This document shows positions 1,640 through 63,962 of a stretch of 64,000 nucleotides of DNA, one piece after another. The DNA is from Mobula birostris (taxonomy: Eukaryota). Below the pieces are notes generated by a model. It was not told the DNA's origin. It was given only the letters and a program-made list of their open reading frames with translations, and made no database searches. Made by a program: the position numbers and the translations under genes. The DNA lies in NCBI RefSeq assembly GCF_030028105.1, contig NC_092384.1, positions 17,491,629 to 17,555,628 of the forward strand, written 5' to 3'. Positions within the stretch are counted from its first letter, which is position 1, and each line of letters opens with the position of its first letter.

Positions 1640-1790
1640 GCACCATAATGTTATGTTCCCTGGGATACTCCGGTTTCCTCCTACACTCCAAAGACTTACG
1701 GGTTAGTAGTTTAGTTCGTCACATGGGCACATGGGTGTGATTAGGCGGTGTGGACTTGTACCGGAAGGCCCTGTAACTGTGTTCTATTGC
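1640..1790. repeat. SINE fragment (V-SINE/HE1-like central domain)
   Basis: 'tactccggtttcctcc..ccaaagactta..ggttag' motif, also at 56335-56460. Confidence 0.45.
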
Positions 1791-2756
1791 TAAAGTAAAT
1801 CTATTTCATAAGCACGCTGATCTCTCTGCTTTACCAGATAATAGCTAATGCACTCTTCCTGCTATCGATCTTTGCGAAATGCTTTGCTCTCCCTCTGGTT
1901 TAGTGAAGCAAAGGCAGTGGTGTGCTCAAACGGGGCTTGTTCAACCTTTTGGAAAATTATATTTAATATAGCTAACTGATAGAGAGGTCAGCGATCATAC
2001 ACTAAATTATGTAAAATCCAAACAATAAGGATAAAAAAAAAATGTTGGAGTAACATTTTGTCTGCGCACAATCATACTGTCCATACATCAAACCAGAGGT
2101 GGGATATCGACCGTTTCAGGCTGGAAGTCGCTATGTTTACTTCAGATTTTCAAACCACCGGCTGTAAGAATCGTACGGATAGGATGGGGTTCTCAGTTCT
2201 GGCCATCTCTTTTATTTCATCTACTAATTCCTATACCTTACGCCCCACGACGTTATGTACATGGGGATCATACGATGTTCCACCTCTTATGCATGCGTCG
2301 AATTATTATAATCATTGGCGTGACCAGAATTCGTCCCCGTCGTACAAACTCAAACTGTGACCCTTCCCACTCACATTATTTAAGTTAAGGATATTGGAGC
2401 AAATAAGAAGTCCTGATGGTAAGTCTCGCTTAACGAAGGCAAGCTCGAGCGCGGCATCCTGGTCCTCCATGGATTTGACTGGTTTTGCTGGTAATTCACT
2501 TAAATTACGATCGAAGTACGTACACCAAATGGACGTAGTAGTTACAGTAAATGAATAAAATGGCATTTGTTTGGGCTAAAATTATGTCATAGCGTTTGAT
2601 AGTAAAATGTAATGGTAAAAATTTAATCATGAATGCTTCAGCTTCAACTTGATATCATTCTAAGAGGCACCCCTATATTTCCGGGAGTGTTACGAACACT
2701 GGTAGAAGATTTAGTGGAATTCTATATAATGAAATCGGTGATGTATGTATGACTAC

Positions 2757-2790
2757 CCTGTCTTAGTTACTGCAGTCGCTTCATTTGCAC
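2757..2790 (-). CDS. Receptor copy A, candidate cytoplasmic exon 2 (34 nt; GANEATAVTKT if entered in phase 1, VQMKRLQ* if phase 0)
   Basis: tttAG acceptor and GTAGTC donor are conserved in copy B (57426-57459) although the adjacent intron differs. Confidence 0.4.
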
Positions 2791-3771
2791 CTAAAGACGT
2801 GACGTGAAATTAAAACTAATTGCATCAACCTGGAGAAAGTGACTAATGAAACACAAGAAGAGAAATGTTATCAGGTAGGGAAAATTTAATGAGATTGAAG
2901 TGCTGGAAACCTGAAATAATACAAAGAAATGGAAGACACAAAACTTTAGTTGATCAGGAACCACCAGTTAAAGAGAAGCAGTTAATGTTGCATTCTGGCG
3001 AATGGTCTTCAATCTGGAATGTCAGCTGGTTCCCTTTCCAAAAATACCGTCAGTAGCTACCGATTGTTTACTGTTTGGATTCCAAATGAAAGAAGGCAAT
3101 ACTTTTATCCGTTTTCGGTATTTCTTCCCAAATTGAGGATAATGATCATTCAGCATAGCATCGTGGACCAGAAGATGCCATGTGGAGTTTCATTTAACAT
3201 GTGGTTATCATTGTTCATAACATACTACAGCGTTTTGTTGCAAGTATATTCGATTCCATTGCAGGTTATGCAATGCTGTGTGGATTTTCGTTGCGGATCG
3301 GGGTTAAAACTGCATATAATATTGCAAAGACCAGTTCAACAAAACATTACGTCGTTGCATTTTTTTATCTTTTTTACTATCCGTTGAGATCAAATGTAGC
3401 AGACATTAGGAATTGATTTGAAACGCACTGTACTTTCCCATTGTGCAGTAAACTGTGATTCTCGTAAACCAGCATCTACTAGTTTCTCGCAGTCTCAGAT
3501 GTTTGTTTAATTATTCGCCAAACCATGTTACCTTCCACTGGGAAACATTACCGCTCACCTTCCAATGCAACCGCTTGCGAACTGGTGTGGAATCTTGAAA
3601 GAACACAGGAAGCAGATGCAACGGGTACATGCAAATAAATCATGGATATATACTTGAAAATAGTTTTAAATTTTCCTGCTACGCTCCAAAGTTTTATGGA
3701 ATAAAATAGATTCATAATATCTATGCTATGCGTGTACCCTGCTCTTAAACAAGACGAGTCACGGCATCTAC

Positions 3772-3815
3772 CGGGTCTTCATTCTGACATCCAGCCAAAT
3801 AATTTGTGTTACGCC
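3772..3815 (-). CDS. Receptor copy A, cytoplasmic exon 1 (GRNTNYLAGCQNEDP)
   Basis: Long polypyrimidine tract TTTCTTTTTGTTTTCTTTTCTGAAG; phase 1 matches the TM exon; conserved in B at 58463-58506. The 3' boundary is uncertain. Confidence 0.6.
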
Positions 3816-4395
3816 CTTCAGAAAAGAAAACAAAAAGAAATAATTTGCATTGTAAACACTGAACATTATCCGTTTGATACCCAACGAATTAATCATCTAA
3901 GTGGAACTGCTGAAGTTACAGATCTTTCAGAAATTATTTGCTGGTAACAGTCGTGGTAATATACTCTGTTCTGCATTCATCTGCTGCTATGCTCAAAGGA
4001 TTTTGACTTTCAACGAGGCTGTAAAGTGATCATAGCATTACAGCGACAGTACTGTATTTAAATATTGTAACCAATATGGAAATTAAGACCAATGAGCCGT
4101 ACATAAGTTGGTCAATGTTCTTTACACAATCAGAGAGACTTTAGATCAACGCCAAGTCTTTTATGTTTCAAAATACGGATCTGCCATTTTACTGAAAAGG
4201 ACATTTGAAGAACTCCAAAGGGATATAGCAGCAATCGTGAATGAGATATGAAATACTTCCAGTGGACTGGTGAAATAGTTGAATTTTAAAATCCAGCTTG
4301 TATTGTGCCGGAATATTATCACTGAAATCCGGCTTCGAAAATCACGATCCATGTCCAATCATGCTGTAAATGTCATTTGCTGTTTTAAAGTTAAA

Positions 4396-4741
4396 GATCA
4401 TAATAGGAATCCTTAGTTTCATGAGACCATGGATTTGCCATTCGCTTGAACAACATCGGTGGTGTGTTAGAAAGTTTCCTTGGTAAGTTTCCAGGGCGCA
4501 GGCCTAAGCAAGTTTGTATGGAAGACCAGCAGTTGCCCATGCTGCCAGTCTCCCCTCTCCACGCCACGGATGTTGACCAAGGGAATGCCATTAGGACCCA
4601 TACAGCTTGGCACCGGTGTTGTCGCTATGTGTGGTTAAGTGCCTTCCTGAAGGACACACATGCTGCCTCAGTCAAGATCAATTAGCGACCTTCAAATCAC
4701 TGGACGAACTCCTTAACCACTTGGCCACGGGCCAACACTAA
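4396..4741 (-). mobile_element. tRNA-derived SINE, present in copy A only
   Basis: Reverse strand begins GTGGCCAAGTGGTTAAGG (A-box-like); absent from the aligned position in copy B (~59080). Confidence 0.7.
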
Positions 4742-4805
4742 ATATCATTAAAGCTTCTATTTTGTACGAATATACGTGATGTTTCTCAGCGATCTCAGTT
4801 CTTAC

Positions 4806-4910
4806 CGTGCGATCTCTTTCTCTTCAGCGAAATTATTATCAGAACTAAAATTGCCAATCCGCCGACTGCACATGTAAAAATTAATCTAAGAACAGCGCCT
4901 TGCAGATGTA
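4806..4910 (-). CDS. Receptor copy A, transmembrane exon VHLQGAVLRLIFTCAVGGLAILVLIIISLKRKRSH
   Basis: tttcctcCAG acceptor, G|GTAAG donor, 105 nt, phase 1-1; hydrophobic segment with an N-terminal Arg followed by a basic stop-transfer KRKR. Confidence 0.85.
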
Positions 4911-6161
4911 CTGGAGGAAACAAAGAAACCGTGAAGCATTTATACATCTGAAAACCAATCGACACGTGAGAATCAAAAATGCAGATCATTTTATAAGCTC
5001 CCTTCAAATTTCCCTACACAACGATGGGAAAACAGAACATATTAATGACAGAATATACAATATAGAACAAAGAAATCTGGTTTTTATTTTCTCCAGACAC
5101 ACGCGAGAAATTTACTAAGACTATGAATAGACTCGGCTGCATCTTCCTTTACTTCCCTTGACAATAGTTATCAGCACAACTATTGAACGTGTAAACATCA
5201 ATCCAAATACGATTCTAATCACGATTCAAATGGTTAAATCATGTCTGTCAAGAAGATTTCTCAGTACGATCAAAACCTAAAGATAACTCGTAGGAGTCCC
5301 GGTGCAGCAACAATTCGCTTCCGCATTACATGCTGAAATTCCTCGCTATGAGTTTAACACTGTATCCTCTAAGCCTCCTGAATGTGTATCGAGCATATTA
5401 AACATATTTTCCCACTGTTATGGTTTCCACAGGTTTAGGAGTGACAAACCCGAATTCATAGAAAACTGTTTTAATGAAAACATAGACCAAATTCGAGTCA
5501 TCCATTTGAATTGTGTTGCCTACTATTATTGGAAGGTAATTACGCAGAGACTAAATTTTGACAAAGTCTGTCCACAGTTTCGCTCCCTATGCATTCGGTC
5601 CAGGTGGCAATTAAGTGTCACTCCTCAGTGTTCAGGAATTCCTATTTTGATTCTGACTTTGCCCCAAAAAACTATGTCAATGAAATACACCTTTGCTCAA
5701 CAGCAGGTGGTTTCCCCCCATTGTTACATCATCATGCGATTCAGAGTTTACGTGTAGCTTTGCCTCATCTTTGACCAATGTCCAGAATTTTGTTACCTTA
5801 CACGTACAACACGAATTTAATTTCTTAATTCATCCTACACGATTTAAACTGAGGGTAAAAGAAATTTGATTTAAAAACCATTCACATTAAATGTTCACTG
5901 CAAACAAGTAATCTTAAAATTTCTCTCTTCTTCCGTGTTCGGATAGCTGTTCAGTTCCTGTTCTTAAGCAGATTTGATCTACCCAGCTATATCATTTGGG
6001 AACGTTTCCAACTTGCCCGGAACGCTAGAGTTTCTGAAAGTGTTGAAAATTCAGAGTAGCACACAAAGTACTGAAGGTACGCAGCAGATCAGGAGAGGAA
6101 TAAAGTAACGAGGTTTCGGTCCGAGATCTGATATCGGGACGCAATCAAGATACCATCTTAC

Positions 6162-6455
6162 CTTGCTCCAGGATGTGGCTGAAACAGGCAGGCACCGTGA
6201 GGGAGACATGCAACACCAGACAGATGTAAACATCTTTTCCCCAAGCAGACTGATTAATTTCCAATAAACTGTAAGCCTCATATAAACCCTCCGCCGTCCG
6301 GTTAATATCTGTTTTTATTCCAGTGAGAATTTGCCTGTTATTCTTTTGCCAGACGATTTGTAATTCCTTCGGGTAGAAGGCAGCTGTTTTACAGAGGAGC
6401 TTCCGAGGAGACGAAAACTCTGCAATAGGAACGATTTCCAATGGAGTTGGGGGAG
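6162..6455 (-). CDS. Receptor copy A, C1-set Ig domain exon
   Basis: LLCKTAAFYPKELQIVW...GLYEAYSLL...YICLVLHVSL fits the C1 pattern (C-x4-FYP-x4-W, YxCxVxH); ttcAAG acceptor, G|GTAAG donor, 294 nt, phase 1-1. Confidence 0.92.
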
Positions 6456-7789
6456 CTTGAATAAAAAGAGTTATATTGGGTGTTACCATCCATTTAGTTC
6501 AAGTAAATTCCTTTATCTTCCCGTCAATTACAATGACATCTCACTATCAAATTAGTTACCCGCCATAGGTTCCCAGCATTTTATAAATTATTTTAAGTTC
6601 AAATTCAAGTTCATAGTTAATAAACCACACAGATGTACATGGCTAAATGAAACATCCTTCTTTATACTTTATACTTTATACTATATACTTTATTGTCTTC
6701 TGGGGTCAACTGCAAAATGCAGTCCATGTATTCACACACAGCACGTGCAGTCACCATCCGGCAGATCCAGTGAAAAATAAACAAAGCAAAATCGAGGCAC
6801 CGTGCAGAGACAGATGAAAGGAAGTATTCGAAGAAGGCACAGAGCAGGCGAATCTAAGGGGTGAGAAGTGAAAAAGACATTCTGTTTTGAATGGTCTTTC
6901 AGCTTTATCACATGATTCTGTTTGCGGCAGTGCGTAGGTTTTGGAAAATATTCCTTTCTGTATTTTTTTCATTTCCAATTAAAACTGAACGATAAAACCT
7001 AAAATATTACAGATGTCCACACTCCGAACGCAAGAAGCTCTTGCACATTGGCAACTCATTTGCTCAGGTTGTTTTTCAGAGCTTACGTTGGAGCTTTCCA
7101 GTCATCAACATTCACTGATAGAGCTTTCCTCGGAATGTATATCATTGCTAGAAAATTTCTCCCGCATTTAATGTGTTGAATGTGGCAAATCCTACCCTCC
7201 ATGAAACAACTAGGAACGGAAAAGCGGAGATGATATTAACCGCATTTATTCTACATTTCTGTTCTTTCATAAACCTGTCGGCCTGCAGCAAAATGGTCGA
7301 AAATGACCTGGCACTGCTATACGAACGACGGTGCCCTGCAGAGAGGCAACCGAGGAGCTGAACGAACTCCGCTTCTCCCTACAGAGATTTCACTGAAAGG
7401 TAAGCCCAAAATTCACGATTTTCTAAACTTGGACTGCTTCCGCTGCAACTATGGTCCGTATTTAACTTAGGAAAGGCTATTTTCAGATTGCTTTATCAAT
7501 ATGTCACAACATTTAGCATTTTGCCCTGCCTACAATGGCCATCCTGAGCTCACGGTTGCCCGCACAGTACTGCCATGGCCCATATATAGATGACAGATGT
7601 TAACGTGCTTGTTGTCGTGAGGCAAATTAGTTTGTATAAATCCTCATGGCTCGAGATGGAGTCCCATCCGAAGTCTTGGGAGGCTCATGCATAATTTGAA
7701 GGTGCCTTGATAGGGGTATTCAAAATATCCTGACCCACGGGTGAGAAGCCGGAAGACTGGATATGACTAATGTTTTGTAGTTGTTCAAG

Positions 7790-8210
7790 AAAAGATCTAA
7801 GAAGACTCCGGGATCTTTTAGGCTGGTGAGACTGACGATTGTAAATTGTAATTTGTTGGCAATATTACAAGTGACAGGATGCGTAACTATTCAGATAGAA
7901 GTTCGAATAGCCATCAGGATTTTGTGCATGGTAAGTAATGTCTGGCTTATCTTAAAGAGTTTTTCGAGGAGTTTACCAGAGATCGTGTTGAAGGAAATGC
8001 AGTGGATGTTATTTACATGGCAATCCCTTGGGCAAAGTCCGTAATGAGAGGCTGATCAAGAAGGTCCGGTTGGAATTCAGGATGAATTAGTAAACTGCAT
8101 TTAACATTGGCTTGGCGGGAAAGCCAGGGAGTGGTTGTAGACGGCTTCCCTCTGACTGGAGGCCTATAACTAGAGGTGTGCCGCGGGGATCGGTGCTGGC
8201 TACGTTGATA
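7790..8210 (+). mobile_element. Degraded CR1 RT fragment in the V-C1 intron, shared with copy B
   Basis: Remnants of YRPVSL, SQHGF and SGVPQGSVL motifs; homologue at ~62100-62530, so it predates the duplication. Confidence 0.7.
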
Positions 8211-9081
8211 GTTCTTAAATAATTTTTTATGACAATGGATTAAACTGGTTCAGAATTTTTTTCAGATCTGCACAGTGGGTAACGAATGCAGACAGCTGTA
8301 AAATGGGCTGTAAAATGACAGCTGGAATTCATTCGCTTTCGAATTACATTCGTGCTCAGCTCTCTACCCTTTGCATTCTAACCCTATCAAAATTCATCTC
8401 GATATTACGATTTCTATTTCTCTCCCTATTTTGAATGGGGAAAGAGGTATAGATAGAAGTTTTGCAAAGCACATTTGGATTGATAATTTGCTGCGCGTGC
8501 GACAAATAGATACATTATATTACTATTAATTCTTTTGGATCTGGGTGAGTTTGTAACGTTGACATATCCTATAAGAGAGTAGATAAAATTGTTCATGATT
8601 TGCCTCATGTGTGATGGGAAATCGAGCTTTCCAACTACAGCCACTCACATTAGTAACAATATTATTTTAACATCTTGCTTGCAAAGCAAATATTACTTCA
8701 CTTGAAAATTAATTCCTTGTTTTTGAAGCACCTTCACGATGATAATGCTAAAATCGAAGGGCATCACTAACCTTGGACATTAGCTTTAAATAGGAGATTG
8801 CCGATCGATAGGTCTGCACTAACAGCAGTTGTAAGGAGTACGATACAGCAAACAGAATCAGCGTTATTTCTCGTCCAATTGACGTTGCCTAAAATGTAAT
8901 TATTTTGTTCTGTTCTTTTTAACTCTACAATTGGAGCTTGTAGAATGGGGTTTGCTTTAACGCGTGAAACAAATCCACTCTCGCTGTTTGTTTTATCAAA
9001 TAGTAACATTACATATTAATCTCATCATTAGCTTTAATTTATATTGCACAAAAGCGAAAATCTCCTCGCAGCCGCACTAAC

Positions 9082-9384
9082 CGAACACAGTGAGCTTGGA
9101 GCCACTTCCATTCCAGAAAGATCGTTCCCGATACTTTGTTCCACAGTAGTAAATTCCGGAATCGGCGAATTTCACATCCATAAGAATAAGCGTTCCTCTT
9201 GACTTTTCGAAACTAAATTGTTTTCTGCTGTCACTTTCTAAAAATGCATTCTCGCCTTCCCTCCACCAAAGAAAGTTAACAGTATCTTTTGATATTGGAG
9301 TATTGCAGTGCAAGGTAACATTCGTTCCGCCCGGAACGTCCAAGTCCGTAGGGAATTGATATACTCTGAACGCAGGCACTTCGA
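9082..9384 (-). CDS. Receptor copy A, V-set (germline-joined VJ-type) Ig domain exon
   Basis: VTLHC...FLWW...DSGIYYC plus a J-like WNGSGSKLTV in the same exon; CAG acceptor, G|GTTAGT donor, 303 nt, phase 1-1. Confidence 0.93.
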
Positions 9385-9598
9385 CTGTTGCCGGCGGAAA
9401 AAAAACAAGAGCATTAATAACAGCTACACACAGGGAATAAATAAGAACCTAAAGACGTACTGTATGTTACCGGATAACGAAGAGACAAAGACGACCGAAT
9501 TGCTCAACCGCTGAAACTAGGTATGCAGCGGGAAACCAGGTTTAAATTTTCTAAAATAGAATACTCAGTTGAGAAACGGAACATTTAACTTAGCATAC

Positions 9599-9653
9599 AT
9601 AGACAGGTAATAGCCAGGAGCGCCATGTACGAAACCGTAAATTTCTCTGACAT
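9599..9653 (-). CDS. Receptor copy A, leader (signal peptide) exon MSEKFTVSYMALLAITCL
   Basis: ATG, hydrophobic core, T|GTATGC phase-1 donor joining in frame to (F)EVPA-FRVYQ; conserved in B with one change. Confidence 0.75.
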
Positions 9654-9697
9654 ATTACAGAAACCGAACCCAGCAATATTGGGATACAAGTGATATT

Positions 9698-14829: not shown

Positions 14830-17190
14830 CATATAACTATATAACAGTTACAGCACGGAAGCAGGCTATCTCGGCCCTTTTAGTCCGTGCCGAAATCTTA
14901 CCTAATCCCACCGACCTGCCCTCATCCTCTATTACTTTCCTGGCCATATAGCTGTCCAATTTAACTTTAAACGACAACGTCGAACCTGCCTCAACCACTT
15001 CTGCTGGAAGCGCGTTCCACAGAGCTACCATTCTCTGAGTAAGAAGCTTCCCCTCATGTCACCCCTAAACTTTTGTCCTTTAACTCTCAACTCATGTCCA
15101 CTTGTTTGCATTTCTCCCACTCTCCACGTCAACTCTATCTATCCCCCTCACAATTTTAAATACCTCTGTCAAGCCCCCTCTCAACTTTCTACATTCCAAA
15201 CAATAAAGACCCAACTTGTTCAACCTTTTTCTGTAACTTAGATGATGAAACACACGTAACATTCTAGTAAATATTCTCTGTACTCTCTCTATTTTGTTGA
15301 CATCTTTCCTATAATTCAGTGACCAAAACTGTACACAATGCTCCAAATTTGGCCTCACCAATGCCTTGTACAATTTCAACCTTACATCCCAACTCCTATA
15401 CTCAATGCTCTGAATTATAAAGGCCAACATATCAAAAGCTTTCTTCACCACTCTATCCATATAAGATTCCACCTTCAGTGAACTATGCACCATTATTCCT
15501 ACATCCCTCTGTTCTCAACATTCTTCAATGCCTTACCGTTTACCAAGTATGTCCTATTTTGATTAGTCCTACCAAAATGTAGCACCTCACATTTATCAGC
15601 ATTAAACTCCATCTGCCATCTTTCAGCCCACTCTTCTTACGGGCCTAAATCTCTCTGCAAGCTTTGAAAACCTACTTCATTATTTACAACTCCACCTGTC
15701 TAAGTATCATATGCATACTTACTCATCCAATTTACCACTCCATCATCTAGATCCTTAATGTATATGACAAATAACATTGGACCAGTACAGGTCCCTGAGG
15801 CACACCACTAGACACCGGCCTTCATTTTCACAAACCGTTATCCACCAAGACTCTTTGGCGTCACCCATCCAGCTACTGCTGAATTCATTTTACCACTTCA
15901 ATATTAATACCTAACGATTGAAACTTCCTAACCAGCCTTCCGTGTGGCAACTTGTCAAAGGCCTTACTGAAATCCATATAGACAACATGCACCACTTTAC
16001 CCTCGTCAGCTTTCCCAGCAACCTCTTCAAAAAATTCAATAAGATTTGTCAAACATGACCTTCCACGCACAAATCCATGTTGAGTGTTTCTAATCAGACT
16101 CTGTCTATCCAGATAATTATATATACCATCTCTAAGAATACTTTCCAACAATTTACCCACCACTGCCATCAAACTCACAGGCCGATTATTGCTAGGTTTA
16201 CTCTTAGAACCCTCTGTAAACAGTGGAACAACATGAGCAAAACGCATATCCTCCGGCACCATCCCCGTTTCTAATGACATTTGAAATATTTCTGTCAGAG
16301 CCCCTGTTATTTCCATACTAACTTCCCTCAAGGTCCTAGGGAATATCCTGTCAGGACCCGGAGATTTATCCACTTTAATATGCCTTAAATGTTCCAATAC
16401 TTCCTCTTCTTTAATCATCATAGTTTCCATAATTCCCTACCTGTTACCCTTATCTTACACAACTCAATATCCTTCTCCTCAGTGAATACCGAAGAAAAGA
16501 AATTGTTCAGAATTTTTCCCATCTCTTATGGCTCTACACATAGCTGTCCACGCTGATTCTCTAAGGGACCAATTTTATTCCTCACTATCCTTTTGCTCTT
16601 AATATAAAGGTAGAAACCCTTGGGATTTATTTTCACCTTACTTTCCAAAGCAACCTCAAATCTTATTTTAGCTTTACTAATTTTAATTCTTAAGATTATT
16701 TTACATTCTTTATATTCCTCTACCGCCTCATTTACTCCATGCTGCCTTTATTAATTGTAGATATCTCTGTTTTTCTAAACCAAGCTTCCAATATCCCTTG
16801 AAAACCATGGCTCCCTCAAACTTTTAATCTTTCCTTTCAACCTACCAGGAACATAAATATTCTGTACTCTCAAAATTTCACCTTTAAATGACCTCCATTT
16901 CTTTATTATATTCTTCCCATAAAACAAATTGTCACAATCCACTCCTTCTAAATCCTTTCGCATCTCCTCAAAGGTAGCCTTTCTCCAATCAAAAATCTCA
17001 ACCCTGTGTCCAGACCTATCCTTCTCCATAATTTGTATTGAAACTAATAGCATTGTGATCACTGGACCCGAAGTGCTCCCCAACACAAACCTCCTCCACC
17101 TGACCAGTCTCACTCTCTAGCAGCAGATCCAACACTGCCCCTTCTCTCGTTGGTACCTCTATGTATTGCTGCAAAAAATTATCCTGAGTG
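14830..17190 (-). mobile_element. 5'-truncated CR1 LINE ORF2 (end of endonuclease, linker, RT), frameshifted
   Basis: ORFs 16775..17113, 15885..16430 (KSPGPD, RPVSL, QHGF, YMDFSKAFDK) and 15092..15493; tail at ~14830. Confidence 0.9.
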
Positions 17191-19739: not shown

Positions 19740-21425
19740 GGTTCAAAAAACTAGGTAATGATCAATAACTGGAAGATTATGAGGCTAGCAGGAAGGAGTT
19801 TAGGAATCAATTAGGAGAGGCAGAAGGGGCCATGAGAAGGCCTTGGCGAGCAGGGTTAAAGAAAATCCCAAGGCATTCTACAAGTATGTGAAGAGCAAGA
19901 GGATAAGACGTCAGAGGATAGAACTAAACAAGTGTGACAATGGAAAAGTGTGTATGGAACTGGAAAAGAAAGCAAAGGTAGTTAATGAATACTTTGCTTC
20001 GGAAAAGTATCATGACGATTGTGGGGATGACTTCAGCGGATTGAAAGGCTTGAGCATATAGACATTAAGAAAAAGGATGTGCTGGAGCTTTTGGAAAGTG
20101 TCAGGTCTCCGGAACTGGACGAGATGCACTCCAGGATACTGTGGGAGGCGAGGGAGGAGATTGATGAGCCTCTGGCAATGACCTTTGGATCATCAGTCGG
20201 GACGGGAGAGACTCTAGAGGATTGGAGGGTTGTAGATGTTGTTCCATTATTCAAGAAAGAGAGTAGACCAGTCAATCTTACTTCTGTGGTTGGTAAATTG
20301 ATGGAAAAGATTCTGAGAGGCAGGATTTATGAACATCTGGAGAGGCACAATATGATTAACAATAGTCAACATGGCTTTCTCAAACGCAGTTCGTGCTTTA
20401 CGGGCCTGATTTAATTTTTTGGAGGATGTGACTAAACACGTTGATGAAGGCAGAGTAGTAGATGTAGCGTACATGAATTTCAGAAAAGCATTTGATAAGG
20501 TATCTCATGCGAGGCTTATTGAGAAAGTGCGAAGGCATGGGATCCAAAGGACCTTGCTTTGTCGATCCAGAACTGGCTTGCCCACAGAAGGCAGAGTAGT
20601 TGTAGACGGGTCATACTCTGCATGAAGGTCTGTGACCAGTGCTGTGCCTCAGGGATCTATTCTGCGTCCCCGTCTCTTCGTAATTTTTGTAAATGACCTG
20701 GATGAGGAAGTGGAGGGATGGGTTAAAAAATTTGCTGATGATACCAAGGTCGGGGGTGTTGTCGATAGTGTTGAGGGCTATCAGAGGTTAGAGCAGGACA
20801 TCGATATGGTAAAAAAAAACTGGGCTGAGAAGTTCCAGATGGAGTTCAAAACAGATAAGTCTGAGGTGATTCATTTTGGAAGGTCAAATATGATGGCAGA
20901 ATAAAGTATTAATATCAGGCTCTTGGCAGTGTGGGATATCAGTGTAATCCTGGGGTGCGAGTCTATTGGACACTCAAAGGTGTTCCGCAGGTTGACTCTG
21001 TTCATAAGAAGGCATATGGTGTATTGACCGTCATCAACCATGGAATTGAGTTTAAGAGCCGAAAGGTAATGTTACAACTTTATTCAACCCTTGTCAGACC
21101 CCACTTGGAATACTGTGCTCTGTTCTGGTCATCTCACTACATGCGAGGAAGGATGTGGAAACTATAGAAAGGGTGCAGAGGAGATTTACAAGGATGTGGC
21201 CTAGAGTGGGGAGCATGCCTTATGAGAATAGGTTGAGTGAATTCGTCCTTTTCTCCTTAGAGCAGAGGAGAATGAGAGATGACCTGAATGAGGTGTATAA
21301 GATGATGGGAGGAATTGATCGTGTGGATAGTCAGAGGCTTTTTCCTAGGCCTGAAATGATTCGAGAGGGCACAGTTTTAGGTGTCTGGATGTAGGTACAG
21401 AGGAGATGTCAGCGGTATTTTTTTT
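19740..21425 (+). mobile_element. Degraded CR1 ORF2 (RT), multiple frameshifts
   Basis: ORFs 19843-21394 carry SQHGF, MNFRKAFDKV, SAVPQGSIL, KFADDTK, RPHLEYC and ERVQRRF. Confidence 0.9.
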
Positions 21426-23147
21426 TACGTGTAACGCTCAGTTATATTGGCTCGTAAATGTCTAGCGGAAATCCCGCCCAGCACCTGCCTGAACGCTTCC
21501 CACTGAGTCGATTGCTGCACCAATAACGCCCGAATCAATCCCAAACATCAATCATCAGCCAGCACACACATTATGTGTGTATGAGAAAGACTTGTCCTTA
21601 TCGAGGAAGGAATTTACAGAGGAGCAAAATAAATATCCTGAAATTGTGGCTTTAAAAGAGACAGCTGTCTCTGAGGAAGAAATTCAGAATTAGTCAGTAG
21701 GATACTACCTAAAGGCTGGGGTGATACTGAGGAAGTTGAGATCAGCCATTGTGCCTGCAAGTGAGGATTGGGCCGTTGAACATAAAGTAGTGGTTCCAAA
21801 AGTTTACAGGGCTGAAATGTTAAACATGGCTCACAGTATGCCTTTAGGTAGACAGTATGCCTTTAGTAAAGAAGACAGTTCACAGCATTATGAAGGAATT
21901 CTATTGGCCTAATTTAAGAACGAATGTTGTGAATTATTGCAGAGGTTGCCATACCTGCCAGGGTGTGGGGAAACCTAATCAGGTTATTCAAGTAGCACCT
22001 ATTAAATTGATACCTGTTTTTGGTGAACCTTTTTCCAGGGTCATAGTGGATTGTTTAGGCCCACTACCAAAGACTGCAGCTGGTCATCCGTATTTGTTAA
22101 CAATTATGTGTGCTGCACCTAGGTTTCCTGAAGCCGTGCCTCTCAGAAGCATCCAGGCCAAGACTGTGGTAAGACATTCATGAAGTTTTTCATACTGGTA
22201 GGTCTGCCAAAGGAAATTCAATCTGACCAGGGTAGTAACTTTACTTCGGGAACATTCCAGCTCATAATTTATGAACTGTGGGCTAAACAAATTGTGTCAC
22301 CTGCCTACCACACAGCGTCTCAAGGTGCTTTGCAGCGATTTCATTCTACTTTAAAGACCATGATTAAAACCTACTGTCATGAGAATGACAGGGACTGGGA
22401 TGAAGGGATACACTTATTACTTTTTGGCGTGTCCATTTCAGAATCCCTGGGGTTTATTCCATTCGAGCTCATTTTCGGCCATAGGCCCAAAGGATCTTTG
22501 ACCTAGAAGTGTCTAACACAAAAGTGTGTGTCAGTGTGTTAGATTATGTTTTGAAATTCCAGAAAAGACTTAACAAGGCTTGTGACCTTGCAAAACAGAA
22601 TTTACAAAACTCCCAAATTAAAATGAAGCAGTGGTATGATAAAAGAACGAGGGAACGGATGTTCGAGGTTGGAGATAAAGTATTGGTCTTGTTCCCCCTG
22701 TTGACCAACCCCGTCCAAGCGCAAATTCATGGACCATGTGAAATAATTAAGAAAATTGATTCTTTGAATTATGTTATTCAAACTCCTGACAGGAGAAAGG
22801 CTACCCAATTAGTGCATGTACATATGGTGAAGCCTTATTATGACTCTGAGATGGTACCAGGAAGTGCTGTTATGAAAACAAATGTAGTAATGAGGTGCAA
22901 GATCATTTTAACAAGCTGAATATCATAACAACCAGACATGAGAATTACAATATTCTGACAGACCTTACTGATAAAGTCAGTCATCTGGAGCCTGCACAGA
23001 GAAAACAATTGAAAGAATTAATTAGCAAGCATAAGGATTTATGTTCTGACATTCCAAGACGGTGTACAGCTGCAGAGCAAGACGTCATTGTAAATTCAGG
23101 GCAGCCGATCAAAGAGCATCCTTACAGAATGATTTTAGAGAAAAGTG

Positions 23148-23997
23148 TGTTATGTACCCTGTAACTGGGTTGCCAAACCAGCAGAAATGGACCATTTAGT
23201 TGGAGTCTGGTTTAACAGAACTAATACTTTATTAAAGAAATAAGTAACACAGTACTCTAAACGCAAGGATATAAATGCAACAGGTTAGCAATGATAAAAC
23301 ACACATGTGCACAGAACTAGGGTAATAGGAATCAATCAAGTTCTATCGCAGTCTAGGGGTAAAATGATCAGTCTCAAGTAACGCAGAGTTCAGTTCAGCT
23401 TAGTACAGTTCGCAGTAATCGCTGTTCTGCCGTTGGAGAGAGAGAGACAGAGACAGAGAGAGAGAGAGAAAGATATGCAAATCTGATTCAGCAGACCTTG
23501 ATGTTCTTCGCAGTTAGCTTTCGGGGTGAATCTTTTATGTCTTCCGTGGTCACCGACTGCGACCCCTCCGTTCCGGATACGACCGTTCTTCCGCGGTGAA
23601 CCCGGCACCCAGGCAAGGACGGACACACACACCAGGTCCCGCCGATTGTACCTTTTCACCCTGCGCGTCTATGGTCGGTTCCCGGGACCAGACCTCCAAA
23701 CTTTCAGCAATTTGTGGGGGCACACCGTTTTTCCAGGGTCTCGTTATCTCGTGATCTCGTGGTGTCCCTTGCCTTAGCGAACCTGTTCTTTTTATCCCCC
23801 TGCTGGGGTATCGCCTGTCCATCAAACTTCAAACAGTTCAGGTTCAAAGCAACCGGTCTGTCAATATTCTGAAATGTGTCTCTTTCTCGTTAATCTCTCT
23901 CTCACTTCTCTCTCATTAGCATTTTGAATGTTTCTGCATTGTCTCTCTTATCTCTCTCATTTGCATCAATCTTCGGATAACTTGGTTTGTCGTCCCA
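23148..23997 (-). repeat. 3' LTR of the nested element (850 bp, TG...CA, internal (GA)n)
   Basis: Direct repeat of 27239-28077; purine tract GAAGGATAAGGG adjacent on the minus strand (PPT-like). Confidence 0.92.
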
Positions 23998-26900
23998 CCC
24001 TTATCCTTCAAAGGATTTTTACCGGCATAAAAATTATAGGCATGAATGCATTATTCGATACACACATATACAGGGTCATCAGCTATTCGGCTAATACAGA
24101 GAACTTTAATTTGTCTACACCTTGACAAACAGTCAGCAATCACATTTTCCGTTCCTTTTATATGTTTTATTTTAATATCCTCTAAGACCAGGCTCCAACT
24201 TAGCAATTTTTGTTTTTTATCCCTCATAGTGGCCAAAAACACTAATGGGTTGTGATCAGTGTAAATTCTCAGTGGTTTCCGTCCTGGACAGATATAACAA
24301 AGATCGTCCCACACCGATTTAGAATTCTTTGGCAAGAGCTTAGTAAGAGGCAGGGTAATATTCGCAAAGTTTTTGCAAAACTCCCGATAGTACCCCACCA
24401 TCCCCAAGAACCTTCTCAGGGCTCTCTTGTCTGTCGGGGTGGGGACTTCAGAGATAGCCCGCACCTTAGCCTGCATCGGTGCCAGCTGCCCCTGTCTTAC
24501 CACAAATCCCAGATAAGTGATCTTTCCGTGGCCGAATTCACTTTTTGCGTGGTTCACTGTCAGGCTGGCTTCAAACAGCTTTTTAGACAGCACCTCTACT
24601 GCCACAATGTGCTCCTCCCACGTGTCACTCCAGACCACTAAATCGCCAATATACGCTTCTGCGTTCTTTAGCCCTTTTGTCACTGAATTAATCATCCTAT
24701 AGGGGTGTTGCTTACAAGGCTGACCTGATGTGACAACAACACCATGTACCGGCTCTTTGCATCGCCTCGGGACATCCGGACATACGTGTGCGTGTCGGTT
24801 AATTATCTTTCTCAGCGGCTCGTTCTGTTCAGGGGTTAAGTGAGAGAACTCATCAGCAAAGTTGGCCAAAACAATAGAGTTCTCCCATCTGGTCGGCACC
24901 ATACTTACCTTTTCAAAATGGGTTTTCCCCTTATCAGGTGGCACCCTAGCCTCAATAATTTTCGTGATAACACCGACTAGGTCTGCTCGCCTATCGTGGC
25001 AAGCTGTTGCATATCAATAGCCTGTAATTGTGTTAGCTCACGTCTACAATAGTCAATAGCATCCATCCTCCTGTGCGGCAAGTAAAACTCTTTCATGATT
25101 CTATCGACTATCCTCCTTACACCAAAATGTTCACCATGGGGTATTTTGTGGGCCAGGTTAAAAATCTCATCCCCATAAATTTTCGGCACCACCCCCATTC
25201 CTCATCTGCGGCCACGGTAGTTGGTCTCCATTTCCTCCTTAGTACTCCCTCCTTCACATAATAGCCCACTGGCTCCCTTTTTAATTCTGCTTCGGAGAGA
25301 GCTGTCTCCGTCAAAACCATTAGCTCCTCGTCTCGTTCCTGTGCCTGTATAAATTCCTTCCTTGCTAATGATAAGTCTAACTCAACTCCCTTACTTTCTT
25401 CCGTTTCACTACGCCCCTTCTTTTCACTTTCTTACCCCTCCTGGTACAAGGCTGGTAAAAACGTCTCAGCTAAATCTACATTCGCTTCGGCAGCCTTTCT
25501 GGAGATGCGCCGAGTCACTGCGCAAACGGGATAAGCCTGTGAGTCCATGGGCAGGTTGGCTTGTCAGTTTTACTGCTGGGTACACCTCTCCGTCGGCGAG
25601 GTCATTACCGAGTAACATCTCCACGTCCTCCATCGGTAGTTCGGGCCTCACCCCGATCGTTACCGGTCCGGAGATCAAGTCGCTTTTTAGGTGTATCTGG
25701 TGCAAAGGTACCGCTTCAGTCTCTTTCCCAATGCCTCTTATCACACTGACCTCCCCAGTCTCGGTCTTTGAACTAAAGTCTAAAACACTCCTCAACATCA
25801 GTGACTGACAAGCTCCAGCGTCTCTCCAGATCCGCACTGGAACTGCGTTTGACCCCTCCTTCACCGACACCAATCCGGCCGAAATAAACTTCTCGCGCCC
25901 TTCCTGAACTCTATCAGACCTCTTCTCCCCTAGCGGTTTGTTTGCCGGCTCAATACAGCCAGTCGGAGTCGTTTTCCTTTCCCCGTCTCCTTCTTTGGGG
26001 CAAAGCACCTGGACGCAAAGTGACCGGCCTTCCCACAATTATAGCATACGACCCCAGGAGACTTCCTACCAAACTGCTTCCCGTCTTCCTTATCCTTCTC
26101 ACTAGTGCCTGGCTTACTTTTTGGCTTTTCCAGCGAACTCTCTCCGCCCTCTCGACTACCCCTGTTGTAGCTTTTACTCGGGGTAAACTTCACTGTGTGT
26201 GCCAACGCGTACTCATCCGCTAACTTAGCAGTTGCGACTAAGGTTTCTGCCTCTTTCTCATCTAGATAAGGCCTCATACCTTCAGGGACACAACCTTTAA
26301 ACTGCTCAATCAGTATTACCTGTAGCAGTCTGTCATAATCCCCACTGACCCCTTTCCAGGCGCACCAACGCTCACAATACATCTGCATCTCACGGGCTAA
26401 CTCTAAATACGTGCGGCCCCACTGCTTCCTCGCATTCCGGAACCTCTGCTGGTATGCCTCCAGGACCAACTCGTAAATCCTGAGTATCGCCTCTTTCACC
26501 ACATCATACCTCTGGGCATCTTCTGCGGACAATGCCGAGTAAGCTTGCTGGGCTTTTCCTTTAAGCACGCTGTGAAGCAAAACAGCCCACTTATCCCTCG
26601 GCCAGTCCTGACTTGCAGCGACCTTTTCAAAATGTAGAAAGTACCGATCAACATCAGCCTCCTCAAATTGGGGAACCAGCCTAACCTCCTGAGTAGCCCT
26701 GAACCCTCCACCTTGGTTCGGCATGGGCCCCTGTGCTAACCTCATCCTTAACTTCCCCAGCTCAAATTCCCTTCCTCTCTGTTTCTCCCTCTCTTCTCGT
26801 TCGAACTGCCTGTCCCTCTCTTCTCGCTCTAACTGCCAGTCCCTCTATTCTCGCTCCAGCTGTTTTACCCGGAACTTGTGTTCGAGTCTCAATTTTTCAA

Positions 26901-31770: not shown

Positions 31771-34700
31771 CCATAGAACCATAGAAACTACAGCACAGAA
31801 ACAGGCCTTTTGGCCCTTCTTGGCGGTGCCGAACCATTTTCTGCCTAGTCCCACTGACCTACACACGGACCACATCCCTCCATACACCTCCCATCCATGT
31901 ATCTGTCCAATTTATTCTTAAATGTTAAAAAAGAACCCGCATCTACCACCTCATCTGGCAGCTCATTCCATACTCCCACCACTCTCTGTGTGAAGAAACC
32001 CCCCCCCCAATGCTCCCTTTAAACTTTCCCCCCCTCTCCCTTAACCCATGTCGTCTGGTTTTTTTCTCCCCTTGCCTCAGTGGAAAAAGCCTGCTTGCAT
32101 TCATTCTGTCTATATCCATCATAATTTTATATACCTCTATCAAATCTCCACTCATTCTTCTACGGTCCAGGGAATAAAGTCCTAACCTAGTCAACCTTTC
32201 TCTGTAACTGAGTTTCTCAAGTCCCGGCAACATCCTTGTAAACTTTCTCTGCACTCTTTCAACCTTATTTATATCCTTCCTGTAATTTGGTGACAAACAC
32301 TGAACACAATACTCCAGATTTGGCCTCACCAATCCCTTATACAACGACATCATAACATTCCAGCTCTTATACTCAATACTTTGATTAATAAAGGCCAATG
32401 TACCAAAAGCTCTCTTTACGACCCTATCTACCTGTGACGCTACTTTTGGGAATTTTGTATCTGTAGTCCCAGATCCGTCTGTTCTACTGCACTCCTCAGT
32501 GCCTTACGATTAACCCTGTATGTTCTACCTTGGTTTCTCCTTCCAACGTGCAATACCTCACCCTTGTCTGTATTAAACTCCATCTGCCATCTTTCAGCCC
32601 ATTTTTCCAGCTGGTCCAAGTCCCTCTGCAGGCTCTGAAAACCTTCCTCGCTGTCTACTACACCTCCAATCTTTGTATCATCAGCAAATTTGCTGATCCA
32701 ATTTACCACATTATCATCCAGATCATTGATACAGCTGACAAGTAACAATGGACCCAGCGCTGATCCCTGTGGCACACCACTAGTCACAGGCCTCCACTCA
32801 GAGAAGCAATTCTCTACTACCACTCTTTGGCTTCTTCCATTGAGCCAATGTCTAATACAATTTACCAGCTCTCCATGTATACCTAGCGACTGAATTTTCC
32901 TAACTAACCTCCCATGCGGGACCTTGTCTAAAAATCCATGTAGACAATATCCACTGCCTTCCCTTCATCCACTTTCCTGGTAACCTCCTTGAAAAACTCC
33001 AATAGATTGGTCAAACATGACCTACCACGCACAAACCCATGTTGACTTTTCCTAATAAGTCCCTGTCTATCCAAATGCTTGTAGATTCTGTCTCTCAGTA
33101 CTCCTCCAATAACTTACCTACTACCGACGTTAAATTTACCGGCCTATAATTTCCTGGATTACTTTTCGATCCTTTTTTAAACAACGGAACAACTTGAGCC
33201 ACTCTCCAATCCTCTGGCACCTCACCTGTAGACAGCGACATTTTAAATATTTCTTCCAGGGTCCCCGCAATTTTAACACTAGTCTACTTCAAGGTCCGAG
33301 GGAACACCCTGTCAGGTCCCAGGGATTTATCCAATTTAATTTTCCTCAAGACAGCAAGCACCTCCTCCATTTCAATCTGTACAGTTTCCATGATCTCACT
33401 ACTTGATTCCCTTCATTCCATAGACTTCATGCCAGTTTCCTTAGTAAATACAGACGCAAAAAAACCTATTTAAGATCTCCCCCATTTCCTTTGGTTCTGC
33501 ACATAGCTGACCACTCTGATCTTCAAGAGGACCAATTTTATCCCTTACAATCCTTTTGCTCTTAATATACCTGTAAAAGCTCTTTGGATTATCCTTCATT
33601 TTGGCTGCCAAGGCAACCTCATGTCTTCTTTTAGCCCTCCTGATTATTTCTTAAGTATTTTCTTGCACTTCTTATACTCCTCAAGCACCTGATTTACTCC
33701 CTGTTTCCTACACATTTCATACAACTCCTTCTTCTTCTTTATCAGAGTTGCAATGTCCCTTGAAAACCAAGGTTCCTTATTCCTATTCACTTTGCTTTTA
33801 ATCCTGACTGGAACATCCAAACTCTGCACTCTCAAAATTTCTCCTTTGAAGGCTTCCCACCTACCAATCACATCTTTACCAGAGAACAACCTGTCCCAAT
33901 GCACGCTCTTTAGATCCTTTCTCATTTCCTCAAATTTGGCCTTCTTCCAGTTCAGAATCTCGACCCTAGGACCAGATCGTACCTTGTCCATGATCAAATT
34001 GAAACTAGTGGTGTGATGATCATTGGAACCAAAGTGCTCCCCTACACAGATTTTCGTCTCTTGTCCTAACTCATTTCCTAACAGGAGATCCAATATTTCA
34101 TCCCCTCTAGTTGGTCCCTCTATATATTGAATTAGAAAACTTCCCTGAACACATTTTACAAACTCTGAACCATCTAGATCCCTAACAGTATGGGAGTCCC
34201 AATCAATATATGGAAAATTAAAATCCCCCACCACAACTTTATTTTTTTTGCAGTTGCCTGCTATCTCTCTGCAGATTTGCTCTTCCAAGTCTCTTTGACT
34301 ATTGGGTGGTCTGTAATACAATCCCAATAATGTGGCCATACCTTTCCTGTTTCTCAGCTCCACCCATAAGGACTCCGTAGCCAAACCCTCTAATCTGTCC
34401 TGGCTAAGCACTGCTGTAATATTTTCCCTAACAAGCACTGCTACTCCCCCACTTTTCATTCCTCTGCCTCGATCACATCTGAAACATCGGAACCCTGGAA
34501 TATTAAACTGCCAGTCCTGCCCCTCCTGTAGCCAAGATTCACTAATTGCTATAACGTCATATTTCCACGTGTCAATCCACGCCCTCAACTCATCCGCCTT
34601 CCCCGCAATACTCCTAGCATTGAAATATATACACCTCAGAAGATGTTTACCTCCACTCTCAACCTTTCTATTAGCGGATTTGCTTGAACTTTTAATATCA

Positions 34701-35785
34701 TTTATTTTCCCCCCAGCCACACGGTCAGCTCTGGCACTCTGGTTCCCATCCCCCTGCAAATCTAGTTTAACGCCTCCCCAATAGCACTAACAAACCTCCC
34801 TGAAAGGATATTGGTCCCCCTGTGGTTCAAGTGTAACCCGTCTCTCTTGTACAGGTCCCACCTGCTCCAGAAGAGGTCCCAATTATCCTGAAATCTGCTA
34901 CCCTGCCCCCTACACCCGTTCCTCAGCCACTTGTTCATCCTCCAGAGCATCCTATTCCTACCCTCACTGGCATGTAGCACAAGTAGCAATCCTGAGATTA
35001 CCACAATTGAGGTCCTGCTTTTCAACTTCCTACCAAGCTCTCTATACTCCAGGACCTCCTCACTCTTCCTGCTATGTCATTGGTACCGATGTGCACCACG
35101 ACATCTGGCTGGTCACCCTTCCACTTCAGAATGTCATGCAAGCGATCAGAGACATCCTTGACCCTGGCATCCGGGAGGCACCAAACCATCCTGGATTCTC
35201 TGTCACGACCACAGAACCTCCTATCTGCATCTCTAACTATCGAGTTCCCTATCACTACCGCTCTCCTCTTTTTCCACCCTCCCTTCTGCACTGCAGAACC
35301 CGACTCAGTGTCAGAGATCCGGCTACTGCAGCTTGTCCCAGGTAAGTCATTCCCCGCAACAGTATCCAATGCGGTATACTTGTTGTTGAGGGGAATGTCC
35401 ACAGGGGTACCCTGCTCTGCCTGCCCTTTCCTCTTCCCTCGCCTGACAGTGATCCAATTTCCTGTCCTCTGCTCCTTTGGCGTAAATCTCCTCTATAATC
35501 TTCTCATTCTCCCGAATGATCCGCAGGTCATCCAGCTCCTGCTCCAGTTCTCTAACGCGGTTTGTCATGAGCTGCAGCTGGATGCACTTCTTGCAGGTGT
35601 CGTTGTCAGGGACACCGGAGGGCTCCCTGACTTCCCACATCCTGCAAGAGGAGCATTCCAACATCCTGCCTGGCATTCTCTCTGCACTAAACAATCTGAA
35701 CAAAAAACTTACCGGAACCTACCCTGGGCTCTGCCTGTTCTCGCCGAAGCCTGTTGAGCCAAAGCCGTCCCACTCTGACTCAGTC
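31771..35785 (-). mobile_element. Near full-length antisense CR1 LINE nested in the previous element
   Basis: ORF1 remnants 35347..35703, 35022..35402, 34762..35025; endonuclease 33644..34759 (YFNARS, SESW, GDFN, SNDH); RT 32440..32823 and 31943..32398; (CATAGAA) tail at 31771. Confidence 0.92.
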
Positions 35786-42700: not shown

Positions 42701-43265
42701 CGCCGCCAAGCTGCGAGAACCCAAGCCTCGAAGATCCCGCCGCCAAGCTGCGAGAACCCAAGCCTCGAAGATCCCGCCGCCAAGCTGCGAGAACCCAAGC
42801 CTCGAAGATCCCGCCGCCAAGCTGCGAGAACCCAAGCCTCGAAGATCCCGCCGCCAAGCTGCGAGAACCCAAGCCTCGAAGATCCCGCCGCCAAGCTGCG
42901 AGAACCCAAGCCCCCAGCCTGCAGCCTCAAGAGTAAAGATCCCAGCCTGTCTCCAAGCTCAGGCCTCTAGACCCCAGACACGTCCTGTCCTGAAGCTATG
43001 TTATGTCTTTGCCTGGTTCTGGGGTCGGAGCCCGCGGCAAGACCCAGGTTCTGGGTCCTTGTCCAATCTTGGGCTCGGAGTCGAAGCCTTTTCTCCTAAT
43101 CCCTGGTTTCTCGTCCTGGTCCCGCTTTCACGAGCCCAAGTCTGCATTCTTGTCCCTGCTCCCTGCCTGTATCCTGTCACGTCCCTTGTCTAGTCAAGTC
43201 CTGTTCCTTGTACTTCATTGTCTATGTCTCGTATTTAGGATCGTTCACAGCACCCTAGTGTGACA
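39754..43265 (+). mobile_element. LTR-like element inflated to 3.5 kb by an internal minisatellite
   Basis: Begins TGTCATGGTCCGGTCC and ends GTGTGACA; TSD only partial (ACCCC/ACCGA). Confidence 0.7.
40486..42912. repeat. 37-bp minisatellite, about 65-66 tandem copies (CCAAGCTCCGAGAACCCAAGCCTCCAAGATCCCGYCG)
   Basis: Unit read directly; the 37-aa periodicity of the translated ORFs equals 3 x 37 nt. Confidence 0.97.
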
Positions 43266-54202: not shown

Positions 54203-54334
54203 TCACAGCTTCTTTGATGTATTTACATCTGCGTATAATGTATGTTTGCTTTGATCTTTGGATGCCGGTGCGCATTTCGAATCGGGAATCTGCAGAGTGG
54301 CGTTAGTCAGTTTGTCAGCTCCACTTCCAGTAGT
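54203..54334 (-). CDS. Receptor copy B, probable terminal cytoplasmic exon TTGSGADKLTNATLQIPDSKCAPASKDQSKHTLYADVNTSKKL* (ITSM TLYADV)
   Basis: TTGCATTACTTTCACAG acceptor, 43 codons plus TGA, AATAAA about 165 nt downstream (~54030-54040). Confidence 0.65.
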   Translation of the reverse strand, partial: TTGSGADKLTNATLQIPDSKCAPASKDQSKHTLYADVNTSKKL

Positions 54335-57425: not shown

Positions 57426-57459
57426 CTTATCTTAGCTGCTGCAGTCGCTTCATTTGCAC
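57426..57459 (-). CDS. Receptor copy B, candidate cytoplasmic exon 2 (GANEATAAAKI)
   Basis: taCAG acceptor and AAG|GTAGTC donor; homologue of 2757-2790. Confidence 0.45.
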
Positions 57460-58462: not shown

Positions 58463-58506
58463 CGGGTCTTCATTCTGACATCCCTCCAAAGAATTTGTGT
58501 TACCCC
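58463..58506 (-). CDS. Receptor copy B, cytoplasmic exon 1 (GGNTNSLEGCQNEDP; may extend 4 nt to 58459)
   Basis: Same acceptor as A; two overlapping donors, CCG|GTAGGT and TAG|GTGAAG. Confidence 0.6.
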
Positions 58507-59145: not shown

Positions 59146-59244
59146 CGTGTGATCTCTTTAACTTCAGTCTCAGCAAAAGTATTATCAGAATTAAAATTGC
59201 CGATCCGCCCGCTGCACGTTCGAGAATCAATCTGGTATCAGCGC
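59146..59244 (-). CDS. Receptor copy B, TM exon GADTRLILERAAGGSAILILIILLLRLKLKRSH
   Basis: TTTCTTTTTCAAG acceptor, G|GTAAG donor, 99 nt, phase 1-1, in frame. Confidence 0.75.
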
Positions 59245-63907: not shown

Positions 63908-63962
63908 ATAGACAGGTAATAGCCAGGAGCGCCATGTACGAAACCGTAAGTTTCTCTGACAT
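63908..63962 (-). CDS. Receptor copy B, leader exon MSEKLTVSYMALLAITCL
   Basis: Homologue of 9599-9653 with the same T|GTATGC donor. Confidence 0.75.

Follow-up and report, generated by a model that had tools for sequence, protein, structure and literature searches.

The V-type exon at positions 9082 to 9384 very probably belongs to a gene that is intact, does not rearrange, encodes a type I membrane receptor and is one of a multigene family of cartilaginous fish with the design of SIRP-type paired immunoreceptors. The gene (here called copy A) encodes a leader, a V domain with a J-like strand built in (VJ), a single C1-set domain, a membrane anchor and a short tail, and its V exon would supply the ligand-binding domain. 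The window, which is the whole stretch of DNA analysed (64 kb, from Mobula birostris), also contains a tandem sister gene (copy B). Within its large family copy A is a recent, short-tailed and ordinary duplicate, whose protein is already predicted by public annotation.

Genes in which V and J occupy one exon beside a C1 exon are material for reasoning about the origins of antibodies and T cell receptors (TCR). A large VJ-C1 family that extends from chimaeras to rays, and of which no published description was found in the literature searched, is a useful addition to the set of genes available for such comparisons. The family as a whole may deserve phylogenetic and functional study, while the exon of copy A alone adds little.

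Structure of copy A

Five coding exons and the relics of two others were located in copy A:

9599 to 9653, minus strand: leader exon (MSEKFTVSYMALLAITCL), with its ATG at 9653 and donor GTATGC
9082 to 9384, minus strand: V exon, the J-like G strand included, flanked by phase-1 introns, Pfam V-set
6162 to 6455, minus strand: C1-set exon of 294 nt (PPTPLEIV...YICLVLH...ILEQ), Pfam C1-set (E = 2.2e-10)
4806 to 4898, minus strand: membrane-anchor exon (GAVLRLIFTCAVGGLAILVLIIISLKRKRSH), identical to the RefSeq prediction P0172
3511 to 3593, minus strand: terminal coding exon (DSTPVRKRLHWKVSGNVSQWKVTWFGE, then a stop), a 96 to 100% match to the end of P0172
3739 to 3822, minus strand: relic of the family's first cytoplasmic exon (GRNTNYLAGCQNEDP), bypassed in the matching RefSeq model
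1841 to 1942, minus strand: remnant of the long-tail exon, interrupted in frame by a stop (..FRKDR-stop-QEE..) and with Tyr changed to Phe in TAFASL

The V exon is 303 nt long and is read on the minus strand, from 9384 to 9082; the preliminary description of this DNA gave no strand. It is bordered by an acceptor (...caacAG/TCGAAGTG) and a donor (GTGTTCG/GTtagt), and is open throughout, its translation running (F)EVPAFRVYQ...DSGIYYCGTKYRERSFWNGSGSKLTVF with no stop (full peptide EVPAFRVYQFPTDLDVPGGTNVTLHCNTPISKDTVNFLWWREGENAFLESDSRKQFSFEKSRGTLILMDVKFADSGIYYCGTKYRERSFWNGSGSKLTVF). The Pfam V-set model matches from end to end (profile positions 1-108 of 109, E = 2.9e-10). A J-like G strand, NGSGSKLTV(F), with a GxG bulge followed by L-T-V, shares the exon with the V core, and the introns on either side are both in phase 1. 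It had been proposed from the letters alone that a V core and a J-like strand lie in a single exon, and that this exon is joined in phase 1 to a C1-set domain. The open 303-nt frame and the V-set match bear out the first point, and the second holds since the next coding exon is C1-set. The Pfam scan that had been suggested as a check matches copy A with both models. One detail of the proposal needs correction: the Cys-to-Trp motif is present, with nine residues between the two, not eight.

No recombination signal (RSS) accompanies the V exon. The exact heptamer-spacer-nonamer pattern had no match in the 64-kb window. A relaxed scan of the whole window (at most one heptamer mismatch, at most two nonamer mismatches, spacers of 11-13 or 22-24) gave one weak site, at 40150, where 1.15 would be expected by chance. 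CACAGTG at 9086-9092 was considered as a heptamer and rejected, as it is the complement of the codons CTC-ACT-GTG (Leu-Thr-Val) and has no nonamer at 12 or 23 bp; these L-T-V codons form the only heptamer near either V exon, in copy A or copy B. Exact and relaxed scans thus agree with the earlier report that no heptamer-nonamer pair is present, and the architecture it described, a non-rearranging VJ exon followed by a C1 exon and lacking an RSS, is correct.

All five coding exons are open and have canonical splice sites, and splicing them as predicted yields a protein of 275 residues. A Mobula birostris RefSeq prediction, P0172, which bears the name "immunoglobulin lambda-1 light chain-like", is 98.9% identical to this product and departs from it only in the last three residues of the leader. 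The first 20 residues of relatives are 75 to 80% identical to the copy A leader (tblastn). Just one C1 exon, which carries YICLVLH (the YxCxVxH motif), separates the V exon from the membrane-anchor exon. The anchor exon has a second in-frame acceptor at 4910, use of which would add VHLQ. As to whether the gene might prove to be one already annotated, as the preliminary description had allowed, P0172 exists as an automatic prediction, and no described, named gene matches.

The tail of copy A has 27 residues and is without tyrosine. The inhibitory tail has been lost, because in the relic of the long-tail exon a stop interrupts the frame and a Tyr has become Phe; copy A would accordingly be classed, on its predicted product, as a short-tailed member with a dead ancestral long-tail exon. 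In the anchor an Arg follows the hydrophobic A-V-L, at the outer edge. Judged by this residue, an activating role for copy A is possible but not secure, because the Arg aligns with the Lys that flanks the anchor of inhibitory relatives (DTK/FILAC).

An insertion at 4396-4738, in an intron of copy A, is absent from copy B. Contigs matching it have depths of thousands to tens of thousands, which points to a high-copy repeat; a tRNA scan of the insertion detected no tRNA-like gene.

The tandem sister gene

Positions 1661-9691 of the window align with 56336-64000 at 79 to 94% identity. The second of these segments belongs to copy B (locus 54.2-64.0 kb), in which all seven exons are open, giving a predicted long form of 345 residues:

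63908 to 63962, minus strand: leader exon
63393 to 63695, minus strand: V exon with J-like strand
60501 to 60794, minus strand: C1 exon
59146 to 59244, minus strand: membrane-anchor exon (GADTRLILERAAGGSAILILIILLLRLKLKRSH), with Glu-Arg within the hydrophobic stretch (LILERAAGG)
58463 to 58506, minus strand: cytoplasmic exon 5; read-through to 58406 gives a short ..ICKAKIL ending, as in P0001
56505 to 56615, minus strand: cytoplasmic exon 6, intact
54203 to 54334, minus strand: last exon, with the ITIM tyrosine replaced (KLTNATL) and TLYADV kept

In the V exon, copies A and B differ at 11 of 303 nt (3.6%), ten of the differences being nonsynonymous and one synonymous, too few for a selection test. 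Between the C1 exons 3 of 215 compared positions differ (about 1%). The surrounding intron differs by about 6%, and the introns about the C1 exons by 6 to 14%, more than the exons do, and the anchor exons are unlike in both length and sequence. This pattern would fit either gene conversion or a strong constraint that acts on the exons of the ectodomain.

Two features of copy B stand out. Four to five residues into the anchor, Glu-Arg or Glu-Cys occurs in copy B and in its Mobula orthologues (LILERAAGG, LILECAAGG), and an acidic residue at that position is unusual for such receptors. In addition, the tyrosine of the membrane-proximal ITIM has become Asn in copy B (KLTNATL, compared with KLTYAxL in relatives), and the distal TLYADV is intact.

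Apart from copies A and B, the window contains only retroelement debris and a minisatellite. The debris lies at 194-1156, 15095-16436, 20031-21391, 21848-26844 and 31946-37717; between the genes it includes LINE reverse transcriptase and endonuclease, and an LTR-type element represented by gag with a SCAN-like capsid and zinc knuckle and by RT/RNase H and integrase fragments. The minisatellite (40474-42916) is GC-rich, with 66 copies of a 37-bp unit at 99% identity, and creates long spurious open frames on both strands.

Splicing and the state of copy A

Three small public runs with the same species label, presumed to be RNA, were examined. A contig from run X2 joins 6455 to 9082 and omits the 2626 nt between them, an interval that has GT..AG ends when read on the minus strand. 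The contig departs from copy A at eight places, all of which translate just as in the paralogue P0152, so that the homologous V-to-C1 junction is used in a sister gene. No contig in the three small runs could be assigned to copy A.

The lack of such a contig raises the alternative that copy A has fallen silent or is decaying, a duplicate whose exons simply happen to have stayed open. The stop in its long-tail exon and the bypassing of the first cytoplasmic exon would be in keeping with this, as would the preponderance of nonsynonymous changes among the V-exon differences between the copies (10 of 11). However, copy A has canonical splice sites and no break in any of its five coding exons, which equal those of a RefSeq model; its divergence from copy B is lower in the exons (3.6% for V and about 1% for C1) than in the surrounding intron (about 6%); and the runs sampled were just three, all small. 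Decay of copy A is consequently considered distinctly unlikely, and the reading of it as an intact, short-tailed receptor gene is preferred.

A receptor family of cartilaginous fish

The V exon of copy A was compared with 1.84 billion representative proteins in an exhaustive HMMER search, which gave 145 matches at E ≤ 1e-10, mostly giant multi-Ig proteins that score through their many domains. Among the single-domain full-length matches, the 20 clusters that were looked up all consist of cartilaginous-fish proteins. Three word-index searches, with a full-length relative, with a profile of 12 sequences and with the C1 region alone (E up to 10), returned cartilaginous-fish proteins exclusively. 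No bird, reptile, amphibian or bony-fish protein occurred among the close relatives found by HMMER, in the word-index searches (the reach of which is limited by their word filter) or in the AlphaFold DB clusters.

Members were found in at least 15 species of rays, sharks and chimaeras (genera Mobula, Hypanus, Hemitrygon, Narcine, Pristis, Amblyraja, Leucoraja, Scyliorhinus, Carcharodon, Mustelus, Heterodontus, Heptranchias, Chiloscyllium, Pristiophorus and Callorhinchus), with profile E-values of 1e-134 to 1e-37. In most species the members retrieved sit on one large contig. Most relatives share the V-C1 layout of copy A, and the Pfam V-set and C1-set models match all 23 members scanned. On the strength of these similarities, copy A is assigned to a chondrichthyan family of predicted V-C1 membrane receptors.

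The automatic RefSeq names of the members conflict, and include SIRP-alpha-like, NCR3LG1-like (B7-H6), Ig lambda-1-like, tapasin-related-like, PD-L1-like, TCR-beta-like, class II-like and CD276 homologue. Such disagreement is to be expected where none of the reviewed proteins stands out as the nearest.

In a maximum-likelihood tree of 50 family members, built without an outgroup and hence arbitrarily rooted, several old lineages are common to sharks and rays, and one of them includes chimaera sequences. Copy A groups with P0172, and copy B is placed beside P0001, within a Mobula-only clade of five (SH-aLRT 100) that is nested in an 18-row expansion of stingray and manta sequences.

Family signature and signalling design

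The conserved V block of the family reads V-x-Q-x-P...C...WW[KR]xGExxFL...DSRK...DSGxYYC...N-G-[ST]-G-[ST]-x-L-x-V, and is followed by VPPTPLxI and then by CKTAxFYPE..W...GLYE.SS.L...YTCLVSH. All 13 members that were aligned have GxG. An N-x-S/T sequon is present in 42 of 56 members, chimaera and manta sequences among them, and its Asn takes the position held in rearranging receptors by the Phe or Trp of F/W-G-x-G. In the window this motif occurs twice:

9094 to 9120, minus strand: J-motif sequon of copy A (N-G-[ST]-G-[ST]-x-L-x-V)
63405 to 63431, minus strand: J-motif sequon of copy B (same motif)

In immunoglobulin and TCR structures, the V-V interface is where the Phe or Trp of the J motif packs, and glycosylation of the J bulge would therefore argue against V pairing of the immunoglobulin type. 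A homodimer prediction for the copy A ectodomain (two copies of residues 20-222 of P0172) scored 0.07 against a mark of 0.32, a result that gives no verdict either way.

The cytoplasmic tails fall into long and short forms. Long-tailed members have an ITIM (LTYAAL and variants), often together with an ITSM-like TxYA[DE]V; other members have tails of 3 to 40 residues. Several members, for example P0042, P0080 and P0001/P0152, have Arg or Glu inside the hydrophobic anchor. Paired layouts of inhibitory and activating forms are known from SIRP, KIR and similar families, and by analogy this family looks like a set of SIRP-type paired inhibitory and activating innate receptors, which would place such receptors in the oldest jawed vertebrates. 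On this model the proteins would be expressed at the surface of immune cells, where the V domain would bind a putative ligand and the single C1 domain would hold V off the membrane. Long-tailed members would signal through the ITIM (LTYAAL) and the ITSM-like TxYA[DE]V. Such motifs in known receptors recruit SHP-1 and SHP-2, and the polarity of the signal would presumably be inhibitory. Their likely activating or decoy counterparts would be the members that combine a short tail with a basic residue in or at the anchor.

The label 'proto-antigen-receptor', which the preliminary description attached to the VJ-C1 arrangement, finds no specific support here, as the family resembles paired innate receptors and the aromatic residue of its J motif has mostly given way to the sequon.

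Sequence and structure searches against known proteins

Outside the family, similarity is equally weak (15 to 24% identity) to SIRP, B7, immunoglobulin light chain and TCR. By sequence, the best single-domain PDB match of the V domain is CD79b (E = 1.3e-7, residues 7-101), followed by TCR alpha and beta V; SIRP V is absent from the top 60 PDB matches. The C1 domain matches Ig C-mu2 (32.8 bits), UrIg2 (24.8 and 22.7 bits per domain) and C-lambda. With the family profile, C-lambda is the best single C1 match in the PDB (48.5 bits), and UrIg2 reaches 110.7 bits summed over three domains. The PDB profile searches were flooded by multi-domain proteins and antibodies, and whole-chain scores from them cannot rank families.

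The AlphaFold2 model is confident (pLDDT 88.5, pTM 0.79) and has two beta-sandwich domains. All Foldseek matches to reviewed proteins have E-values of 1e-13 to 1e-11 at 15 to 24% identity, and no family is singled out among PD-L1 (the best), TCR-beta, Ig lambda and kappa, B7-H6, CD276, SIRP-alpha and -beta, CADM, TAPBPL and butyrophilins. Against the PDB, Foldseek places antibody light chains first (E about 1e-15). VIA-align against PDB representatives gives a tie at Z 14-17 among B7-H6 (the best, Z 16.7), Neph/SYG, butyrophilins, PD-L2 and others. In the AlphaFold DB clusters the top match is a shark protein (E = 2.6e-21, 33% identity), and the next has E = 2.4e-14. By protein-language-model features, two SIRP clusters are nearest (0.97 and 0.96).

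The preliminary description had suggested that the gene could belong to any of several families, among them SIRP, B7-H6, tapasin and the germline-joined immunoglobulin and TCR genes, or form a new lineage. Of these, the germline-joined genes are not favoured, and SIRP, B7-H6 and tapasin are tied at weak identity.

Comparison with immunoglobulin and B7-type genes

Some shark immunoglobulin clusters contain germline-joined genes, and copy A could be taken for a light chain or TCR gene of this sort. Its automatic RefSeq name, the antibody light chains at the head of the Foldseek PDB list and the C-lambda match of the family profile all point that way. Copy A nevertheless does not appear, from its sequence, to nest within germline-joined light chain or TCR genes, because it has membrane-anchor and cytoplasmic exons, ITIM-tailed relatives and only about 20% identity to light chains (19 to 24% across comparisons). 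Light chains are secreted and have no anchor, and TCR chains have a short tail. Furthermore, copy A has WW[KR]xGE for WYQQ and N-G-[ST]-G for F-G-x-G, and belongs to a separate family conserved from chimaeras to rays. An origin among germline-joined light chain or TCR genes is thus exceedingly improbable.

UrIg and UrIg2 of elasmobranchs are described as non-rearranging antibody genes linked to the MHC or to the Ig/TCR complex, and the solved UrIg2 fragment is a disulfide-linked dimer with the order V-C1-C2-C3 (PMC12227049). They resemble copy A in that a single-exon VJ without rearrangement is followed by C1 in a cartilaginous fish, and the C domains of UrIg2 are among the better matches of its C1. 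They are a different kind of gene, however, with several C domains, whereas copy A has one C1 domain, a membrane anchor and relatives of signalling type.

B7-H6 (NCR3LG1) and other B7 and butyrophilin proteins share with this family an ectodomain of V plus C, and a ligand of the B7-H6, CD276 or PD-L1 type, rather than a receptor, might be considered. B7-H6 has the best VIA-align score, PD-L1 is the best reviewed match in Foldseek, and many members bear the RefSeq name NCR3LG1-like. Yet the Z-scores tie across many two-Ig proteins, and the C domain is C1-set in 23 of 23 members, while models of CD80-type and butyrophilin-type C-sets match only two to three of them, weakly. The GxG bulge of the J-like strand is conserved, and ITIM/ITSM tails and charged anchors are features of receptors. 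That the family consists of B7-type ligands is highly improbable.

CD79b is similar to copy A in its W-x-W-K/R-x-(G/E) C strand, its D-S/N-G-x-Y-x-C F strand and the GxG bulge, and its V domain superimposes on that of copy A with Z 13.9, 25% identity and an rmsd of 1.8 (VIA-align). CD79b has no C1 domain and carries an ITAM, and so differs from the V-C1 ectodomain of copy A.

Comparison with PRARP and SIRP

PRARP1 and PRARP2 reportedly have VJ, C1, a membrane anchor and a tail with tyrosine motifs, so that by description they share with this family a VJ-C1-membrane anchor layout without rearrangement. PRARP is listed with CD79, NITR, SIRP, CD8 and NKp30 as a joined-VJ gene (PMC11599192). A kinship of this family with PRARP1/PRARP2 is very unlikely all the same, as none of the searches found a close relative in a bony vertebrate, and as PRARP is cited as a VJ gene present in the MHC (PMC10751288). 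PRARP is discussed as a relic of an antigen-receptor precursor (PMC10751288, PMC11599192).

More tentatively, and with rather low probability, the family may be an independent, undescribed VJ-C1 lineage, kept only in cartilaginous fish and sister to no single bony-vertebrate family. It would descend from a pre-RAG VJ-C1 stock shared with SIRP, PRARP, UrIg and the rearranging receptors, and the J-bulge sequon would then mark an unpaired V domain.

The system closest to this family in working design is SIRP of tetrapods. In both, a type I membrane protein carries a non-rearranging V, complete with a J-like G strand, and after it a C1-set domain, and ITIM-tailed forms are paired with short-tailed forms that have a basic residue in the anchor. 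The domain arrangement of the predicted model resembles that of SIRP-alpha and SIRP-beta-1, with Foldseek TM values (0.72-0.77) among the highest. A true SIRP-family co-orthologue of the bony-vertebrate genes, retaining one C1 domain instead of two, would share this design and would be in line with the nearest language-model clusters, which are of SIRP-alpha, and with the many RefSeq names of the type SIRP-alpha-like. Against such co-orthology, identity to SIRP is 19 to 21%, a level that PD-L1, TCR-beta, Ig-lambda, B7-H6 and CD276 equal. The V domain is matched best by CD79b, and C1 is matched at least as well by Ig C-mu2, C-lambda and UrIg2. According to a survey of 2026, the SIRP family goes back to Tetrapoda (PMC13262535). 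There are further differences in that the J motif is S-G-A-G in SIRP and the sequon N-G-S/T-G here, and in that the present family was found only in cartilaginous fish. Co-orthology with SIRP is therefore regarded as unlikely; there is one C1 domain rather than two, and the searches gave no specific sequence affinity to SIRP. As a nickname for the working design of these genes, in which an intact, non-rearranging VJ-C1 ectodomain is probably carried by paired long- and short-tailed membrane receptors, "SIRP" is nonetheless fair.
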